Part shown: piece after piece, positions 57,247-64,000 of the stretch | How positions within the stretch are numbered: the stretch's first letter is position 1 | How the letters are laid out: every line of letters starts with the position of its first letter | Virus record (IMG/VR): IMGVR_UViG_3300044712_000810 | Location: 186,001-250,000 of that record | DNA: 64,000 nt | Strand: one strand, 5' to 3' | The notes under the pieces: generated by a model | The model's input: only the letters and a program-made list of their open reading frames with translations | The model's database searches: none | Told to the model about the DNA's origin: nothing | Made by a program: the position numbers and the translations under genes

Positions 57247-58216
57247 AGATTTGGCACCTTCTAGAGTGATCTAGATGTAAAAGTCTCTTAATTCGGTGAA
57301 ACTCCTACGAGATAACATCAAGAGGACAATACCGAGCCAAGCCTCTTTAGAGAGGAAGGTGTAACGACTATCCCGAAAGGGAGTACACGGTAACGCTAAC
57401 CGTGGAAACAGAGACTATCTCCCCCAATTGGAGTTTTATGGAAATAAAATATAATGAAATTGGAATTTCTAAAGAAATTTTAGAAAGATTTTGGTCGAAA
57501 GTTATATTCCCAACAAATTTAAATGATTGTTGGGAATGGAAAGGAAATGAAAGAAATAAAGATGGATATAAACGATTTACATATACTCCATCAAAATTGA
57601 ATAGAATTGAAGTGTCTGTACATAGATTTATATTTGAATTATATTATGGTAAAATAACTAATAATTTAGTTGTTTGCCACAACTGTGATAATCCGGGATG
57701 TTGTAATCCGACACATTTATTTCTCGGAACTGTTGCTGACAATATGAAAGATATGGTTAATAAAGATCGATCATGTTATGGTCAATATAACGGTAATAGT
57801 TCTTTAACTGAGGAAAATATTTCAGAAATTATTGAAAATATAATTTCTGGAGTTTACAAAAATAAACACCAAATAGCAGATGATTTTAATGTTGATGTTC
57901 ATTGTATTCAAGATATATTTCGTGAATATACATGGACTAAAATAACATCTACAATTCCAAACTTTAACATAGCAAAATCAATGTTAGATAGTAGAAAAAA
58001 ATTACCTGACGAATTAGTCAATCAAATAATAAATGATTTAAGATTGGGATTATCCCATAAACAAATTGCCACAAAATATAAAATAGCCAAAACAACAGTG
58101 TCAAATTATCGTCAAAAATATCTCGGGGGAGATAAAGATATAGTCTGATCTGCATAGTAATATGCAGCAGTGAGAAAATCACGGAAGAGGAGTAGCGATC
58201 CTCTTCGAACACCATG
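57247..58216 (+). mobile_element. Group I intron (IA-type) in the beta-prime gene
   Basis: P1 GTGCT/GGCAC with U-G at 5' splice site; P AATTCGGTGAAA, Q AATACCGAGCCAAG, R GTAACGACTA, S AAGATATAGTCT; P3 GTCTCT/AGAGAC; terminal G; splicing restores FSA-RSVI. Confidence 0.9.
57438..58148 (+). CDS. Intron-encoded HNH homing endonuclease
   Basis: RFWSKV..CWEWKG..GY..HR..VCHNCDNPGCCNPTHL..GT..DN; C-terminal HTH repeats; lies in P8 loop. Confidence 0.9.
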   Translation: MEIKYNEIGISKEILERFWSKVIFPTNLNDCWEWKGNERNKDGYKRFTYTPSKLNRIEVSVHRFIFELYYGKITNNLVVCHNCDNPGCCNPTHLFLGTVADNMKDMVNKDRSCYGQYNGNSSLTEENISEIIENIISGVYKNKHQIADDFNVDVHCIQDIFREYTWTKITSTIPNFNIAKSMLDSRKKLPDELVNQIINDLRLGLSHKQIATKYKIAKTTVSNYRQKYLGGDKDIV

Positions 58217-58586: not shown

Positions 58587-58886
58587 ATGAGAAATACTAT
58601 ACCAGTAAGATTCGTTTATGATAACAACGAAATTATTACATTTAGTTGTAATGGTATTAATTTAGCAGATAATTTAAATGGAAAATATGCAGATTTAATA
58701 TTAACCGATCGAAAATTAGTAAAATATAAACATGAGGATCATATATTTATTGATGGTATTATAAGTTATGATGACTGTATGTATATATTCGATGGATCAC
58801 TTAATAGATGTTCCGAAATTCTTAAAAAATATAATATATTCGATTTAGATTTATATAATTATCTTGAAAAAAGGTTTCCATCATGA
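58587..58886 (+). CDS. Hypothetical protein between the two beta-prime genes
   Basis: 99-aa ORF, ATGA overlap with catalytic fragment. Confidence 0.65.
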   Translation: MRNTIPVRFVYDNNEIITFSCNGINLADNLNGKYADLILTDRKLVKYKHEDHIFIDGIISYDDCMYIFDGSLNRCSEILKKYNIFDLDLYNYLEKRFPS

Positions 58887-60847
58887 GAAATAAAGAATTA
58901 AAAAGATTAGCATTCTGTAATAGACAACCAACTCTCTGGCGACATTCAATGCCAGCGATTGAAATTATTCCACTTGATAATGATGAAGATGAAACTATTT
59001 CATTGTCTCCACTTATGCTAGAGCCATTAAACGCGGACTTTGATGGAGATACTCTTGCAATATATTTACCTCACGACGAGGAATCACAAAAAGAGATAAA
59101 TGAAAAAGCGTTCATTAAAAATTATGTAACATACGATCAAGATGGAAGTTTTTTAGCCACTGTAAGACACGAAGCATTATATGCCTGTTTTATTCTGACT
59201 GAAGATCAAGAAAGTGATGATAATAATGTAATTCACATTAATACATTACAAGAACTACCAGAATCGTTTGATTATTATAATAATATTACGACTGGTGTGT
59301 ATATTAAAGATATTCACGCTACATGGCCTTATGGTTATGCACTTCTTAATAAATGGTGTGGATTTGACAAAATCCTAATCGATCAAAAAATCGTAAAAGG
59401 AATGTCAAACTATATCAGTTCAGTAATTTATGATTTTCATGGTAAAAACAGTGATGTATTTTATACACACTTAACAAATTTAAATAAAAATCTACTATTC
59501 TTTATTAGTAGCACAGTTCATGCACCAACCATCAATATTAAAGATATGATGGCAATCGTGGATGAAGATACACGTTCAAAATTCAAAAAAATACCATCGG
59601 GTCATGCACACCTTGGATATCATATAAACGAAGCACTTGTTGATAAATGTCTTGATAATTGTGATAAAACATCTCAGTTATATAAATTATTTAAATCAGG
59701 TTCACGTTTTAGTAAAACACAACTTGCACGTTCATGTATTAACATTGGTTATTGTGCCGATGACAGTAACAACGTAGTCGATATACCAATTCGTGGTAAC
59801 TTAATGGAAGGAATCACAGAAGATGACTTCTTTCTAGGTGCACCAGGTACACGTAAGGCAATTGCAGACAAATCGGATGCAACTCCTGACTCTGGTCACT
59901 TAGAACGTACACTCGTTATGGCATTAAGTCCTCTTGAGTGTATTGAAGATGATTGTAATACATCTGGATATCTTGAATTTGAAGTGCAAAGTAAAAAACA
60001 CGCCGAAACAATAGTAGGAAAATATTATCGTTTAGGAATTCATCAAGACTGGACAGTATTAGATGAGACTACAGCGATAAGTTTAGTTGGACAAACAATA
60101 CAAATGCGTTCACCAATGACTTGTGTTACTCCAAATTTTAGAATGTGTCGTAAATGTTTTGGTGACAGACAATATCCAACAAAATATTTAGGTATTTCGG
60201 CAGGACAAAACGTAACAGAAAGATTTACGCAATTAACAATGCGTACTTTCCATGAATCTGGTGCAGCAAGTCTTGAAGCTGACAAAGAGTCAGTTAATTT
60301 CTTAAAATATAATCTTGTTGACGTTCAAGAATTTGATGACATCATTAAAGTTACTGTCACAAATATTAATCAATGCCCAGATAAACTCAAAACAATGTCT
60401 GGATTCATTGGAATCGAAGAAGATAAAATCGTATATCAAAAACTTAAAAATCCAGTTGCAAACAAAGATACTATTAGTACTTTAAATGCAATTCGTGATT
60501 TATTAAAAACACAAAAGAAAAGCTTAAGTGAACCTAAGGAATACTACACTAAGATGATGAAACACATCCTTGAAGTTGGTAAACCTTATAGTTCATTTGT
60601 AGAAATGCTATTTGCAAACATGTTCATGACAGACATCAAAACTAAACAGTTTTGGCGTTATAATCAAGGTCAGAAAGTGGTTTGCAAATTAGGTGATAAA
60701 ACACTAGCAGCTAAATTAAGTCCGCTTCTCGGTTTACTGTTTACTCCAAACGCCAGGACAATCGATGACGTTGGCAAAATCGACGAAATCGATCTTGAAG
60801 AAGAACACTTAACTATATACGAACGTATATTCCTGGAGATGTTTTAA
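58883..60847 (+). CDS. rpoC: RNA polymerase beta-prime catalytic (C-terminal) part
   Basis: NRQPTL, NADFDGD, bridge helix GTRKAIADK..T..SG.L.R.LV, CRKCFG, trigger loop GQ...E..TQLTMRTFH. Confidence 0.92.
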   Translation: MRNKELKRLAFCNRQPTLWRHSMPAIEIIPLDNDEDETISLSPLMLEPLNADFDGDTLAIYLPHDEESQKEINEKAFIKNYVTYDQDGSFLATVRHEALYACFILTEDQESDDNNVIHINTLQELPESFDYYNNITTGVYIKDIHATWPYGYALLNKWCGFDKILIDQKIVKGMSNYISSVIYDFHGKNSDVFYTHLTNLNKNLLFFISSTVHAPTINIKDMMAIVDEDTRSKFKKIPSGHAHLGYHINEALVDKCLDNCDKTSQLYKLFKSGSRFSKTQLARSCINIGYCADDSNNVVDIPIRGNLMEGITEDDFFLGAPGTRKAIADKSDATPDSGHLERTLVMALSPLECIEDDCNTSGYLEFEVQSKKHAETIVGKYYRLGIHQDWTVLDETTAISLVGQTIQMRSPMTCVTPNFRMCRKCFGDRQYPTKYLGISAGQNVTERFTQLTMRTFHESGAASLEADKESVNFLKYNLVDVQEFDDIIKVTVTNINQCPDKLKTMSGFIGIEEDKIVYQKLKNPVANKDTISTLNAIRDLLKTQKKSLSEPKEYYTKMMKHILEVGKPYSSFVEMLFANMFMTDIKTKQFWRYNQGQKVVCKLGDKTLAAKLSPLLGLLFTPNARTIDDVGKIDEIDLEEEHLTIYERIFLEMF

Positions 60848-61208: not shown

Positions 61209-61463
61209 ATGAAGCCAACAAAAGGTAACGCGATTAGAGGTTATAATTCTAATTCTATAATAATTGATGATGCAGGATTTAATGTTAGTGGTAATGTTCA
61301 CATGTGGGGCAGTACAATAATAAATAATCCACTATTACCACTTAAAGAAACAATAATTGAAGCAATTAAAAGTTGCACAGATACTTCTGAAATTAATGAT
61401 GTTTTATCTTCACTTGATGAAATACGAGAACTATTACTTAAACAAGGAATTAAAGAACTATGA
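61209..61463 (+). CDS. Small protein with shared C-terminal tag
   Basis: Ends IKSC.DT.EI..VL...LLLKQGIKEL; paralog of next gene. Confidence 0.65.
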   Translation: MKPTKGNAIRGYNSNSIIIDDAGFNVSGNVHMWGSTIINNPLLPLKETIIEAIKSCTDTSEINDVLSSLDEIRELLLKQGIKEL

Positions 61464-61753
61464 GTTGGTCCGCACAAGGTATACGAATTCTTCCACCTAA
61501 TTCATTTCCACAAAATGCCAATGAAGGCGATGTGTGTTATGATGATAATACTGGTGAAATGAAAATTTTTATATCTGGACACTGGTTACAATTTACTAGT
61601 AATAATCGAACAGAAATACGAAAAATAAAATTAATGCAACGATTATTAGAATGTATAAAAGATTGTGATGATACAAAGGAAATAGTTGAAGTTCTTGATA
61701 ACTTTGAATGGTTAAAAGAAGTTATAATTAAACAAGGAATTAAAGAATTATGA
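61460..61753 (+). CDS. Small protein with shared C-terminal tag
   Basis: Ends IKDC.DT.EI..VL...IIKQGIKEL. Confidence 0.7.
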   Translation: MSWSAQGIRILPPNSFPQNANEGDVCYDDNTGEMKIFISGHWLQFTSNNRTEIRKIKLMQRLLECIKDCDDTKEIVEVLDNFEWLKEVIIKQGIKEL

Positions 61754-61950: not shown

Positions 61951-61957
61951 AAAAATC

Positions 61958-61967
61958 ATATAGAAAT
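61958..61967 (+). promoter_or_regulatory. Putative phage promoter motif ATATAGAAAT
   Basis: Upstream of 62032 gene. Confidence 0.6.
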
Positions 61968-62031: not shown

Positions 62032-62448
62032 ATGGCTGAAATGATTTTTGACCCTGTTCTTGGTAAAGAAGCTGAATGCATTAAGAAAGGCACCAACTCC
62101 AAGGGCGATCAAGTTTGGATGAACAAAGAAACCAAAAAGCGTTTTTCCCAAACCCAGTCAGACGATGCAAAGAAGGCCGCAAAGCCTGGTAAGGCAAAGC
62201 CCAAAACCCAAACTCGTCCTACTACCGCCGCTGCTACTACTCCTGCAGCAAAGAAAGTTGTAAAGAGTCTTATTTACGTCAACAACCAATGTGTCAAAAC
62301 CATCGACGGCAAAGAAGTTAGTAAAGAACAAGCATTTGAACTTATCAAAGAAAACTTCCGCGAAGTCGCACTTCAGAATGCTGAAGTTACAATGAAGAAT
62401 GGTGAAACCAAGATTTATTTCACCATCATGACCGGAAACAAAGGTTAA
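62032..62448 (+). CDS. Protein with possible C-terminal ubiquitin-like domain (PRTRC protein C-like)
   Basis: K/A/P/T linker then ~60-aa domain ending IYFTIMTGNKG; GGAGG SD. Confidence 0.5.
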   Translation: MAEMIFDPVLGKEAECIKKGTNSKGDQVWMNKETKKRFSQTQSDDAKKAAKPGKAKPKTQTRPTTAAATTPAAKKVVKSLIYVNNQCVKTIDGKEVSKEQAFELIKENFREVALQNAEVTMKNGETKIYFTIMTGNKG

Positions 62449-62455
62449 TCTAATA

Positions 62456-62482
62456 GGGGGAGGGATTCCCTCCCCCACTTTT
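62456..62482 (+). terminator. Hairpin after Ubl-like gene
   Basis: GGGGGAGGG-ATT-CCCTCCCCC then ACTTTT. Confidence 0.55.
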
Positions 62483-62493
62483 GGAAGGATAAA

Positions 62494-63102
62494 ATGATAA
62501 GATCATACAAAAAAACGTTAACAATTACAGCGGATGAAATTCCAATTGAATGTTATCCTTCATTACAATTTAAATTAGATTCACCACGTGATGGTCATTC
62601 AGTTAAAATATATAATGAAACTTGGAGTTATTTAATGTCGATGAAAGTTGCAAAAGAATTTATAGAAAAATATAAAGATTCTATCAAATATGTCAACTTA
62701 CAACGACTTATTATTTTTATTAAAAATGAAATTGTTGGTGTACAAACTCAAATTCGACTGTCACCTTATGATTTTAAATATCCTAAAAAAACCATAACAA
62801 CAAGTTATGGTAGAGAATATGTTACAGATGATTATTCAAAAAATCCTCATAGAACTCGTGTTTTACCAATAAATGAAGAAATTGAAATATTATGGGATTA
62901 CTACCGCGTAACAAATAAAGTTGCAGAGTATGAAGAAATCGATTTTACCTTCAAAAATATATATTACTTCATTAAGTTTTTGAAAAAATATAAACAAGAA
63001 TTATTTGAAGCTATTATAATGGATAAAACACATTATCGTACTCTAGTTATTATGAAAACTCAAGAGGAACAAAATGCCAATAGAATTCTTACCAATATGT
63101 GA
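62494..63102 (+). CDS. Hypothetical protein
   Basis: AAGGA SD; 202 aa. Confidence 0.65.
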   Translation: MIRSYKKTLTITADEIPIECYPSLQFKLDSPRDGHSVKIYNETWSYLMSMKVAKEFIEKYKDSIKYVNLQRLIIFIKNEIVGVQTQIRLSPYDFKYPKKTITTSYGREYVTDDYSKNPHRTRVLPINEEIEILWDYYRVTNKVAEYEEIDFTFKNIYYFIKFLKKYKQELFEAIIMDKTHYRTLVIMKTQEEQNANRILTNM

Positions 63103-63427
63103 CGAACCTGTAAAAAATGATCATGATCATAGTTTTTATGGTCCATTAAAAAATCATGCTACTTGTAAAAATATACGAATAAATGATTATGAATTCCTTA
63201 CAAGAAATTCAGAAAATGTTAATATCACTCCTGAAAATGCATTAAAAAAACTTAATACCCATATTGAAAAAATGGAAACTAAGTTTTTGATGTTTTCACA
63301 GTTTGATATTAGTACAGATTATTGGTATCATTCTAGGCACTCTAAACAAAGAATTTATCTTGATCCACGGGACGGTGCATTTTGGAAAGAAAAACTAAAT
63401 TTGAAGTCAACTTTACTCAGTTTATAA
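63074..63427 (+). CDS. Hypothetical protein with shared C-terminal tag
   Basis: GAGG SD; ends NLKSTLLSL. Confidence 0.6.
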   Translation: MPIEFLPICDEPVKNDHDHSFYGPLKNHATCKNIRINDYEFLTRNSENVNITPENALKKLNTHIEKMETKFLMFSQFDISTDYWYHSRHSKQRIYLDPRDGAFWKEKLNLKSTLLSL

Positions 63428-64000
63428 ACAACGATAACAGTGAATATGAAACTATTTTATATTTTCCAAAAGATAATCCCAACACGATTATCATGGAACG
63501 TCCGGGAAGTAATACTTTTCGAAAAATAGATTCTCATCGTGCTGCGAATTTTATGAGACTTACAGAAATCAAAACCGATTGGATAAATATTCCAGGAAGT
63601 TTAGACTCTGTTTCTAAGTTTAAAATTCAAGGTGATATAATTAAATCGATTGTTCCTATCTTTGAAGATGATTATAAAGTATATAATACTACAATCAATT
63701 TTAGTTATATGTTAGAAACAAGTTCTAGAAATGATGTATATGATCCATTTCCATTGGCAGGATTTCATGATAAGAATTTCTCAATGACATGTTTTAAAGA
63801 TCCAAATGAAATGCGTAAAAATAGAATTAAGATTTCATGCAAACTTCCAGTATTCAAACCTTATGTTCGTTGCTCAAGTCAAAAGAGATCACCAATTATA
63901 ACAGTCGAAGACATGTTAATGAAAATTGGTGATAAATTCTATGGTTTCCCATACGGAAACGTTCATGCAAATGGACATATCTGTTATGGAGATGGAAAAC
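63382..64000 (+). CDS. Partial ORF with prokaryotic E2-like motif (runs off window)
   Basis: Frame open from TTG 63382 to window end; FYGFPYGNVHANGHICYG. Confidence 0.55.
   Translation, partial: MERKTKFEVNFTQFINNDNSEYETILYFPKDNPNTIIMERPGSNTFRKIDSHRAANFMRLTEIKTDWINIPGSLDSVSKFKIQGDIIKSIVPIFEDDYKVYNTTINFSYMLETSSRNDVYDPFPLAGFHDKNFSMTCFKDPNEMRKNRIKISCKLPVFKPYVRCSSQKRSPIITVEDMLMKIGDKFYGFPYGNVHANGHICYGDGK

Follow-up and report, generated by a model that had tools for sequence, protein, structure and literature searches.

A predicted ubiquitin-like conjugation gene cassette in a jumbo phage of soil

We analyzed a 64,000-nt stretch (the window) of the 314.8-kb genome of a soil jumbo phage, together with the sequence that directly follows it. 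Six co-oriented genes at and directly past the end of the window form a set that looks built to attach a small ubiquitin-like protein (Ubl) to other proteins. The gene order is Ubl, g2, g3, E2, JAB, E1. The features are as follows, with window positions extended past position 64000 where necessary.

61956..61967 (+): promoter-like 12-mer TCATATAGAAAT, 76 nt (start to start) before the Ubl start codon; its function as a promoter is inferred.
62032..62448 (+): gene 1, the predicted ubiquitin-like modifier, 138 aa, ending in TGNKG.
62456..62476 (+): G/C hairpin (GGGGGAGGG-ATT-CCCTCCCCC) followed by TTTT, a probable partial terminator between the modifier gene and the enzyme genes; this function is inferred.
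62494..63102 (+): gene 2 (g2), 202 aa, unknown; together with gene 3 it is positionally equivalent to PRTRC_F.
63074..63427 (+): gene 3 (g3), 117 aa, unknown; it overlaps g2 and the E2 start.
63382..64336 (+): gene 4, E2-like (Prok-E2_D type), 317 aa, starting at TTG and running past the window end (genome C1:249382-250335); it contains FPYGNVHANGHICYG at residues 189-203, with the predicted catalytic Cys201.
64338-65240: gene 5, a JAB/JAMM peptidase gene outside the window (3339-4241 of L002, the sequence containing the two last genes).
65240-66004: gene 6, a ThiF-type E1 gene of 254 aa, also outside the window (4241-5005 of L002).

The earlier note had proposed a phage-borne Ubl/E2 system from the GNKG end and the E2-like ORF, and had expected E1 (ThiF) and JAB genes just beyond the window. 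Our analysis confirmed the observation and supported the interpretation, and both expected genes were found. The two general statements on which the note relied were also examined on real sequences. All 14 PRTRC_C domains that we fetched have G-x-K-G at the domain end, and 5 of them stop exactly there. PRTRC_B of Ralstonia phage Dina reads PYFNVWERGEICTG. However, the suggestion that the Ubl might target the conserved lysine of a shared C-terminal tag has no support. In this neighbourhood that tag is shared only by two tandem paralogues (61209..61463 and 61460..61753), and nothing links them to the cassette.

The 12-mer occurs 30 times on the + strand and 5 times on the − strand of the genome, and nearly every copy lies 20-150 nt before an ATG. 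The motif is therefore not chance. A GGAGG sits 7 nt before the ATG of gene 1. The 9-bp all-G/C hairpin follows the stop codon of this gene, and the 51-nt stretch around it folds at −22.3 kcal/mol, though the z-score against shuffles is only −1.3. A consensus terminator scan did not call the hairpin because the T run is short. The GC3 of gene 1 is 0.41, against 0.15-0.24 in its neighbours, and the antisense ORF 62158..62478 is an artefact of this GC-richer gene. There is only one Ubl copy in the genome.

We then investigated the domain structure of the gene 1 product. Residues 1-49 are a degenerate, Cys-less InsA-type zinc-ribbon-like domain, and residues 50-77 are a basic, Lys/Ala/Pro/Thr-rich disordered linker. 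The AF2 model gives a beta-beta-alpha-beta-beta domain at residues 78-132 (pLDDT 70-79) with a free tail at 133-138. In a family of 32 representatives, K137 is invariant and G135 is near-invariant. Of these representatives, 20 stop at G-x-K-G, 6 stop at K-S, and 6 carry 1-4 extra residues. Some family members end in Ser or Asn instead of Gly, which is unusual for an E1 substrate. Zn_ribbon_InsA hits were found in 12 of 30 members. Head-to-tail poly-Ubl arrays with GSKG or GVKG at each junction occur in relatives.

The relation of this domain to PRTRC_C was visible only at the level of profiles. The curated PRTRC_C model (cut-off 45.95 bits) gave no hit, also with filters off. A narrow PRTRC_C HMM that we built from 14 mostly proteobacterial sequences did not rank the 138-aa ORF among 2,769 phage ORFs. 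BLASTP of the Ubl domain against the PRTRC_C of Dina found no alignment, and a word search with PRTRC_C found no candidates. The weak Pfam hits of the protein (FakA-like_C, DUF6465, DUF3892) are noise. However, profile-profile comparison (hhalign) with PRTRC_C was colinear over 56-59 columns with GxKG in register (P = 4.5e-6, or 4e-5 without the bridging sequence), whereas the best of 30 column shuffles gave P = 0.008. With only two phage sequences the result was weak (P = 0.003, 4% probability), and it became convincing only with the 33-sequence family. Bridging sequences hit both profiles. The sequence P0098 scores 1e-15 with our PRTRC_C HMM, and KLEB27-3 gp199 scores 2e-12 with the phage profile and 4e-11 with the PRTRC_C HMM. 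Homology of the Ubl domain to PRTRC_C is well supported.

Every informative weak hit of the Ubl model is a beta-grasp, including protein G/L, the ubiquitin fold, SUMO, streptokinase and a bacterial E1-E2-Ubl complex. However, these matches (Foldseek E >= 0.04, VIA Z <= 6.4) and those of the E2 model against the PDB (Z <= 4.6; solved E2 and UEV structures, Z 3.2-4.3) are within the noise range stated for the method, and both AF2 models have only moderate confidence (pLDDT 71 and 69). Foldseek of both models against the PDB found nothing at E <= 0.001. Sequence searches of the PDB with the E2, JAB and Ubl profiles found no solved relative. A predicted complex of the E1 with the Ubl domain scored 0.19 against a mark of 0.32, which is evidence neither for nor against binding.

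The E1 is recognized by Pfam ThiF (PF00899; 9e-13, 48.3 bits against a cut-off of 28.1 bits). Its best NCBIfam hit is PRTRC_ThiF (1.8e-22), and hhalign to PRTRC ThiF sequences gives 98.6% probability. G15/G17/G18/G20, R61, Q62, D133 and C206 are invariant in 48 sequences. The nearest solved relatives are UBA5, SAE2, MccB, UBA6 and ThiF. The JAB gene starts 2 bp after the E2 stop, has an intact E...HSHx7SxxD motif and matches PRTRC_A (1.7e-10; hhalign, 92.8% probability). E109, H158, S159, H160, S168 and D171 are invariant, including in the PRTRC_A of Dina. Homology of E1 and JAB to PRTRC is shown, although both score below the curated PRTRC cut-offs.

The E2 scores 17.8 bits with Pfam Prok-E2_D (PF14460; E = 0.0029, gathering threshold 25 bits) and 17.8 bits with PRTRC_B (E = 0.0016), the latter covering only the catalytic region 186-264, and both scores are below cut-off. 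hhalign to PRTRC_B aligned only the 22-residue Cys motif (P = 0.01). However, Y187, F189, P190, G192, C201 and N225 are invariant in 8 homologues. By language-model features, 26 of the 30 nearest Atlas clusters are Prok-E2_D. The model matches a Prok-E2_D Atlas cluster by shape (TM 0.57 by target over 173 residues, against 0.16-0.23 for the other rows). The family HMM also hits Pfam-recognised Prok-E2_D proteins of the locus L045 (1e-6 and 6e-8). Homology of the E2 to Prok-E2_D is well supported.

The two middle genes, g2 and g3, match nothing in Pfam, NCBIfam, PADLOC, PHROGs or the Atlas, and show no similarity to PRTRC_F or E by hhalign. They are conserved in position in related loci, and in one of these, L032, a single 375-aa ORF replaces both.

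To explore how widely the cassette occurs, related loci were collected from the E1 and from the Ubl. The order Ubl-g2-g3-E2-JAB-E1 holds in 8 loci found from the E1 and in 3 of 3 loci found from the Ubl, and the cassette is present in all 11 related metagenomic loci examined. A search of viral contigs with the E2 found nothing. Against GenBank phages, blastn of the cassette gave only a 122-nt chance-level hit and tblastn of the Ubl gave no match. Relatives there were found only with the family profile, and parts of the cassette were detected in three cultured phages (Arash, D69 and KLEB27-3).

Taken together, we suggest with fair confidence that this is a phage-borne, highly diverged relative of the PRTRC-type ubiquitin-like conjugation cassette (Iyer et al. 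2006, operon class 6d, PMC1779556). In the mechanism that we propose, gene 1 is transcribed from its own phage promoter and partly insulated by the hairpin, so the modifier is made in excess over the enzymes. The free C-terminal Gly138 would be adenylated by the ThiF-type E1, which keeps the GxGGxG, Arg61/Gln62 and Asp133 motifs. The modifier would then pass as a thioester to Cys201 of the E2, and from there to a lysine of a target protein, with g2 and g3 as candidate specificity factors. The JAMM peptidase would reverse the linkage and, in relatives with C-terminal extensions or poly-Ubl arrays, would also expose the G-x-K-G end. The invariant penultimate Lys is most likely a recognition residue for E1, E2 or JAB, as Arg72/Arg74 are in ubiquitin. 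However, there are no expression data for this phage and no biochemical data for any PRTRC system in the literature searched, and adenylation, thioester transfer, protein targets and the role in infection are inferred only.

Other explanations could be considered, although each appears unlikely. The cassette may be a sulfur-carrier or activation system of the ThiS/MoaD type, in which the adenylated C-terminus is thiocarboxylated and the activated sulfur or acyl group feeds a nucleotide or DNA modification pathway. The plain ThiF/MoeB size of the E1, the position of the cassette directly after QueC/PTPS 7-deazaguanine genes in three related phages, and a phosphoribosyltransferase gene 1 kb downstream in this phage are in accord with this view. 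However, an E2-like protein with an invariant Cys and an intact JAMM peptidase are always present, and known sulfur-carrier pathways do not need them. No rhodanese or cysteine desulfurase is present in the cassette, and the QueC/PTPS neighbourhood is not conserved in this phage or in the related loci L031-L034. Poly-Ubl precursors and N-terminal zinc-ribbon fusions also fit a modifier better than a cofactor carrier.

It is similarly improbable that the 138-aa protein is an abundant small nucleic-acid-binding protein merely linked to the enzyme genes, which would act on a host Ubl or on another phage protein. The zinc ribbon in relatives, the Lys-rich linker, the separate promoter and hairpin, and the silence of the curated PRTRC_C model speak for it. 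However, the gene is the first of the cassette in 11 of 11 loci, down to 37% E1 identity, and the association also holds when searched from the Ubl side. The end G-x-K-[G/S] sits exactly at the C-terminus with an invariant Lys, as in PRTRC_C. A version without a zinc ribbon (P0092) and the tandem-array versions keep only the C-terminal domain, and the profile-profile link to PRTRC_C also argues against this reading. A counter-defence device is doubtful as well. Host Ubl pathways are known to target phage virion proteins or prime CBASS (PMC11601603), and the JAB/E1/E2 proteins might interfere with Bil, type II CBASS or Bub, for example by removing host Ubl from phage proteins, with the phage Ubl as a decoy or competitor. 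The E1 gives weak hits to CBASS E1-E2 (Cap2) models (best 8.6e-6). However, a lone peptidase would suffice for deconjugation, yet the full writer set (Ubl, E1, E2) is conserved, and no component matches a defence-system model beyond the generic Rossmann region of the E1, although the PADLOC v2 models used may predate Bil and Bub.

Ubiquitin-like conjugation in bacteria has recently been shown to act as anti-phage immunity (CBASS Cap2, Bil) or in stress response (Bub). Here the full predicted toolkit sits in the phage and is conserved across a large clade of mostly uncultured big phages. Such a set was not described for phages in the literature searched, and neither a 2021 comparative survey of jumbo phages nor a 2026 review mentions it. 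If active, it would give a function to a gene class left unexplained since 2006, would reveal a new way for phages to rewire proteins during infection, and would supply a compact ~60-aa modifier with an unusual G-x-K-G end. It is about as likely as not that large phages encode a complete, active pathway of this type that covalently tags host or phage proteins during infection. In this clade the modifier would carry a nucleic-acid-binding zinc ribbon, so conjugation could tether targets to DNA or RNA, or mark nucleoprotein complexes. This would be the first writer-eraser Ubl system known on the viral side of the phage-bacterium conflict.

The bacterial Bil (type I/II), Bub (6E) and type II CBASS Cap2/Cap3 pathways share the logic of E1, E2, a JAB-type or other peptidase, and a beta-grasp modifier or a target C-terminus. 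However, those are host anti-phage or stress systems, whereas this one is encoded by the phage. Its E1 and E2 are separate proteins, unlike Cap2, and its Ubl is a predicted minimal ~60-aa beta-grasp ending in GxKG. Among cultured phages, unannotated cassettes are found in Salmonella phage Arash (gp251c-gp246c), Vibrio phage D69 (VPHD69_0307-0301) and Bacillus phage KLEB27-3 (gp199-gp194). Each has a related ThiF (25-26% identity) preceded by a Ubl gene ending in TGTKG or AGVKG, and the Ubl is single in Arash, triple in D69 and a four-fold tandem in KLEB27-3. The Arash E1 homologue was detected by mass spectrometry of phage preparations (PMC10585845). These Ubls lack the zinc-ribbon head, gene sizes and spacing differ, and the records annotate the proteins only as hypothetical, structural, 'PRTRC_A domain' or 'ThiF family'.

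The closest known system is PRTRC (NCBIfam TIGR03734-03742; TIGR03735-03742 with Iyer, Burroughs & Aravind 2006), seen in canonical form in Dina with the order E-C-F-B-A-ThiF. The four core components occur in the same order, namely Ubl (C), middle gene(s), E2 (B), JAB (A) and ThiF. The Ubl ends G-x-K-G, the E2 motif is P-[YF]-x-N-[VT]...C-x-G, the JAMM motif is intact, and PRTRC models are the best NCBIfam hits for E1, JAB and E2. However, no curated PRTRC model reaches its cut-off (ThiF, TIGR03736, 79.8 of 144.75 bits; A, 40.8 of 101.8; B, 17.8 of 131.45). No ParB-related gene, PRTRC_E or PRTRC_F is detectable in the genome, and TIGR03734 and TIGR03742 give no match at E <= 1 in the complete phage genome. 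The Ubl carries an N-terminal zinc-ribbon-like domain and a basic linker, and the JAB has a C-terminal extension. The E2 is longer (317 vs 240 aa), and the conserved His that Iyer et al. describe after the E2 Cys in class 6d is not invariant in the phage clade. The host replicon is a lytic-type jumbo phage with its own RNA polymerase, not a plasmid, ICE or temperate phage.

The stretch analyzed here covers bases 186,001-250,000 of a complete 314,837-bp virus record with direct terminal repeats, and the record has 33% G+C. The only sequencing run that holds the whole stretch is a rhizosphere metagenome, which may be the source sample. To read past the window end, the 18 kb that start 3 kb before it were also analyzed as locus L002, in which the coordinate plus 60,999 gives the window coordinate. 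The cassette lies between fragments of a phage multisubunit RNA polymerase. The closest cultured phages share only about 26% identity on beta', and this is therefore an uncultured jumbo-phage lineage. Features of the region include the following.

Window 57402-58148: an HNH endonuclease with a C-terminal HTH.
Window 58883-60847, with L002 6601-8562 and 9018-10226: fragments of a split multisubunit RNA polymerase (beta' and beta) that flank the cassette, the beta' fragment being at window 58883-60847 and a beta fragment lying 3.6 kb past the window end.
Window 61209-61463 and 61460-61753: two tandem paralogous small genes sharing a ~40-aa C-terminal module ending KQGIKEL.
Window 61956-61967: the promoter-like 12-mer TCATATAGAAAT.
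Window 62032-62448: the 138-aa ORF ending IMTGNKG, the candidate modifier (Ubl).
Window 63382 to beyond the window end: the 317-aa E2-like ORF, containing FPYGNVHANGHICYG.
L002 5941-6420 and 12025-13287: a xanthine/hypoxanthine-type phosphoribosyltransferase (Pfam 2.8e-12) and an ATP-dependent DNA ligase (4.7e-20), both downstream of the cassette.
L002 15909-17980 (genome 262.9-265.0 kb, outside the window): TerD, TerC and TerB genes (Pfam E 1.7e-50, 3.2e-45 and 5.6e-19).

The earlier note had described a small ORF with its own promoter motif and a C-terminus in TGNKG, followed by an E2-like ORF, and we found that everything it described is present. The 12-mer occurs 35 times in the genome (30 copies on the + strand and 5 on the - strand), almost always shortly upstream of an ORF, at 20-150 nt, and many of these ORFs have raised GC3. 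A 9-bp G/C hairpin followed by TTTT sits just after the stop codon of the 138-aa ORF. The GC3 of this gene is 0.41, against 0.15-0.24 for the five enzyme and partner genes behind it, which suggests selection for high expression or a separate origin. The same motif also precedes TerD, which has a GC3 of 0.86. The three Ter genes form a GC-rich island that looks like a host-derived tellurite/stress module under phage control. As for the shared C-terminal tag mentioned in the earlier note, jackhmmer found no copy in the genome beyond the two tandem paralogues, and nothing ties these to the Ubl cassette.

The two background statements of the note, on the C-terminus of PRTRC_C and on the PRTRC_B motif, were also tested on real sequences. 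PRTRC_C domains taken from 14 bacterial and phage loci all have G-x-K-G at the domain end; five stop exactly there, and the others carry C-terminal extensions. PRTRC_B of Ralstonia phage Dina reads PYFNVWERGEICTG.

The note had further predicted that E1 and JAB genes would lie just beyond the window, and this prediction is correct. Two bases after the E2-like ORF starts a 300-aa gene with an intact JAMM motif (HSHNTMTANFSTTD), which matches PRTRC_A at E 1.7e-10. Overlapping the stop of that gene is a 254-aa ThiF-type gene, which matches Pfam ThiF at 9e-13 and PRTRC_ThiF at 1.8e-22. The gene order is 138 aa, 202 aa (g2), 117 aa (g3), E2, JAB, E1. In Ralstonia phage Dina, which carries a canonical PRTRC system scoring above all curated cut-offs, the order is E, C, F, B, A, ThiF. 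Therefore, the jumbo-phage cassette mirrors C-F-B-A-ThiF, with the 138-aa gene in the place of the Ubl (C), and g2 and g3 in the place of the helical protein F.

Direct family models do not recognize the 138-aa protein, and the case for it as the modifier rests on five independent lines. An exhaustive profile search found a conserved family of 32 cluster representatives. Nearly all of them have three parts, namely an N-terminal CPxC...CxxC zinc ribbon, a Lys/Thr/Pro-rich linker, and a ~60-aa C-terminal domain. The zinc ribbon hits Pfam Zn_ribbon_InsA in 12 of 30 members (best E 7.6e-7), but it is Cys-less in this phage and in about a third of the members. The penultimate Lys is invariant, and the Gly two residues before it is nearly so. 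Twenty members stop at G-x-K-G and six at K-S, whereas six carry 1-4 extra residues; one further homologue ends K-N. The terminal Ser or Asn in some relatives is unexplained.

The second line comes from poly-Ubl arrays. The family member P0098 is four head-to-tail copies of the domain, each ending GSKG. Bacillus phage KLEB27-3 gp199 has four copies ending AGVKG, and Vibrio phage D69 VPHD69_0307 has three copies ending TGTKG. This is the polyubiquitin-precursor pattern, and it marks G-x-K-G as a processing and conjugation end, the chemistry itself being inferred.

We then explored homology to PRTRC_C. Profile-profile alignment was colinear over 56-59 columns with the GxKG ends in register (P = 4.5e-6, 87% probability; P = 4e-5, 69% probability, when the bridging sequence was left out). 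Thirty column-shuffled controls gave at best P = 0.008. P0098 and KLEB27-3 gp199 hit both the phage-family profile and our PRTRC_C profile.

With respect to fold, AlphaFold2 predicted beta-beta-alpha-beta-beta for residues 78-132 (pLDDT 70-79) with a free tail at 133-138, a model of moderate confidence. The weak structural neighbours are beta-grasp proteins: protein G and L, ubiquitin-fold domains, SUMO, streptokinase, and the Ubl of a bacterial E1-E2-Ubl complex. However, the scores lie within the noise range of the method, and this line is consistent but not decisive. The best viral structural neighbour (BFVD, A0A172Q0B5; Foldseek E 8.8e-3, prob 0.99) is an uncharacterised 63-aa protein of Acinetobacter phage vB_AbaM_ME3. 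Phage ME3 also carries PRTRC_A-like and ThiF genes, although the family profile did not find the 63-aa protein by sequence.

Finally, synteny was examined in both directions. Starting from E1 homologues at 37-52% identity, seven further loci have the same first gene and the same order. Starting from three Ubl-family members, of which one is the poly-Ubl and one lacks the zinc ribbon, all three have Prok-E2_D, JAB and ThiF genes downstream. Salmonella phage Arash has a 72-aa Ubl ending RTGTKG upstream of its ThiF homologue. The Arash E1 homologue was detected by mass spectrometry, but in a list of 116 'virion' proteins that includes many enzymes, which shows expression rather than location. The genome of the phage studied here holds only one copy of the Ubl. 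In three related phages (loci L029 1701-3736, L030 2383-3532 and L047 65-508) the Ubl cassette lies directly after QueC and/or PTPS (QueD) genes of the 7-deazaguanine pathway, and this neighbourhood is absent in the phage studied here.

Among the enzymes, the nucleotide-binding glycines, Arg61/Gln62, Asp133 and a Cys at 206 of the E1 are invariant in 48 sequences, and its closest solved relatives by sequence are UBA5, SAE2, MccB, UBA6 and ThiF. In the JAB, Glu109, His158, His160, Ser168 and Asp171 are invariant and align with the PRTRC_A of Dina. For the E2, the curated models gave only sub-threshold hits over the catalytic loop. However, Cys201 and the F-P-[YF]-G motif are invariant in eight homologues, and 26 of the 30 nearest ESM-Atlas clusters carry Prok-E2_D, and they are mostly viral. 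The AlphaFold2 model of the E2 (pLDDT 69, moderate confidence) matched a Prok-E2_D cluster by shape at TM 0.57 by target over 173 residues, whereas the other rows reached 0.16-0.23. The family HMM hit the Pfam-recognised Prok-E2_D proteins of locus L045, one of the related loci. Against solved structures only weak matches appeared, with about a dozen of the 50 rows being E2, UEV or Bub E2 chains at Z 3.2-4.3. No lead was found for g2 and g3; in one relative they are replaced by a single 375-aa ORF, similar in size to PRTRC_F.

We take the cassette to be a writer-eraser Ubl system. In this proposal the modifier is made from its own promoter, and a hairpin dampens read-through into the enzyme genes. 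The E1 would adenylate Gly138, a thioester would pass to E2 Cys201, and the modifier would be transferred to target lysines. The JAMM peptidase would deconjugate and, in relatives, also mature precursors. Homology of the Ubl to PRTRC_C and of the E2 to Prok-E2_D is well supported. However, the chemistry, the targets and the role in infection are inferred by analogy with E1/E2 systems, without expression data for this phage, and the one complex prediction gave no verdict. No PRTRC system has been characterised in the literature that we could search. The absence of the class-6d conserved His after the E2 Cys is also unexplained.

In GenBank, some phage genes of this kind are labelled 'PRTRC system protein A', 'PRTRC_A domain-containing' or 'ThiF'. 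The enzymes in phages are therefore not unseen, but the modifier genes are unannotated. The 2021 jumbo-phage survey and a 2026 review do not mention a ubiquitin-like system, and no paper in the literature searched joins Prok-E2 with phage in this sense.

The nearest known kind is PRTRC, which is operon class 6d of Iyer et al. 2006 (PMC1779556), but membership in the curated sense fails. All four core proteins score below their cut-offs, ParB and PRTRC_F are not detectable in the complete genome, and the cassette's own genes show no similarity to PRTRC_E. In Dina, PRTRC_E of the canonical system (locus L005 1416-2006) has an Ala/Pro/Lys-rich tail with an AT-hook-like RGPGRPPK and is encoded just before PRTRC_C. 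The jumbo-phage modifier has a zinc ribbon and a basic linker fused in front of its Ubl domain, which is a possible functional analogy. By the available profiles, which may predate the Bil and Bub models, the cassette is not Bil, Bub or CBASS. Set against PRTRC, we rate the cassette as new only as a variant; it is phage-borne and highly diverged, its modifier is fused to a zinc ribbon (Cys-less in this phage), and it has poly-Ubl relatives.
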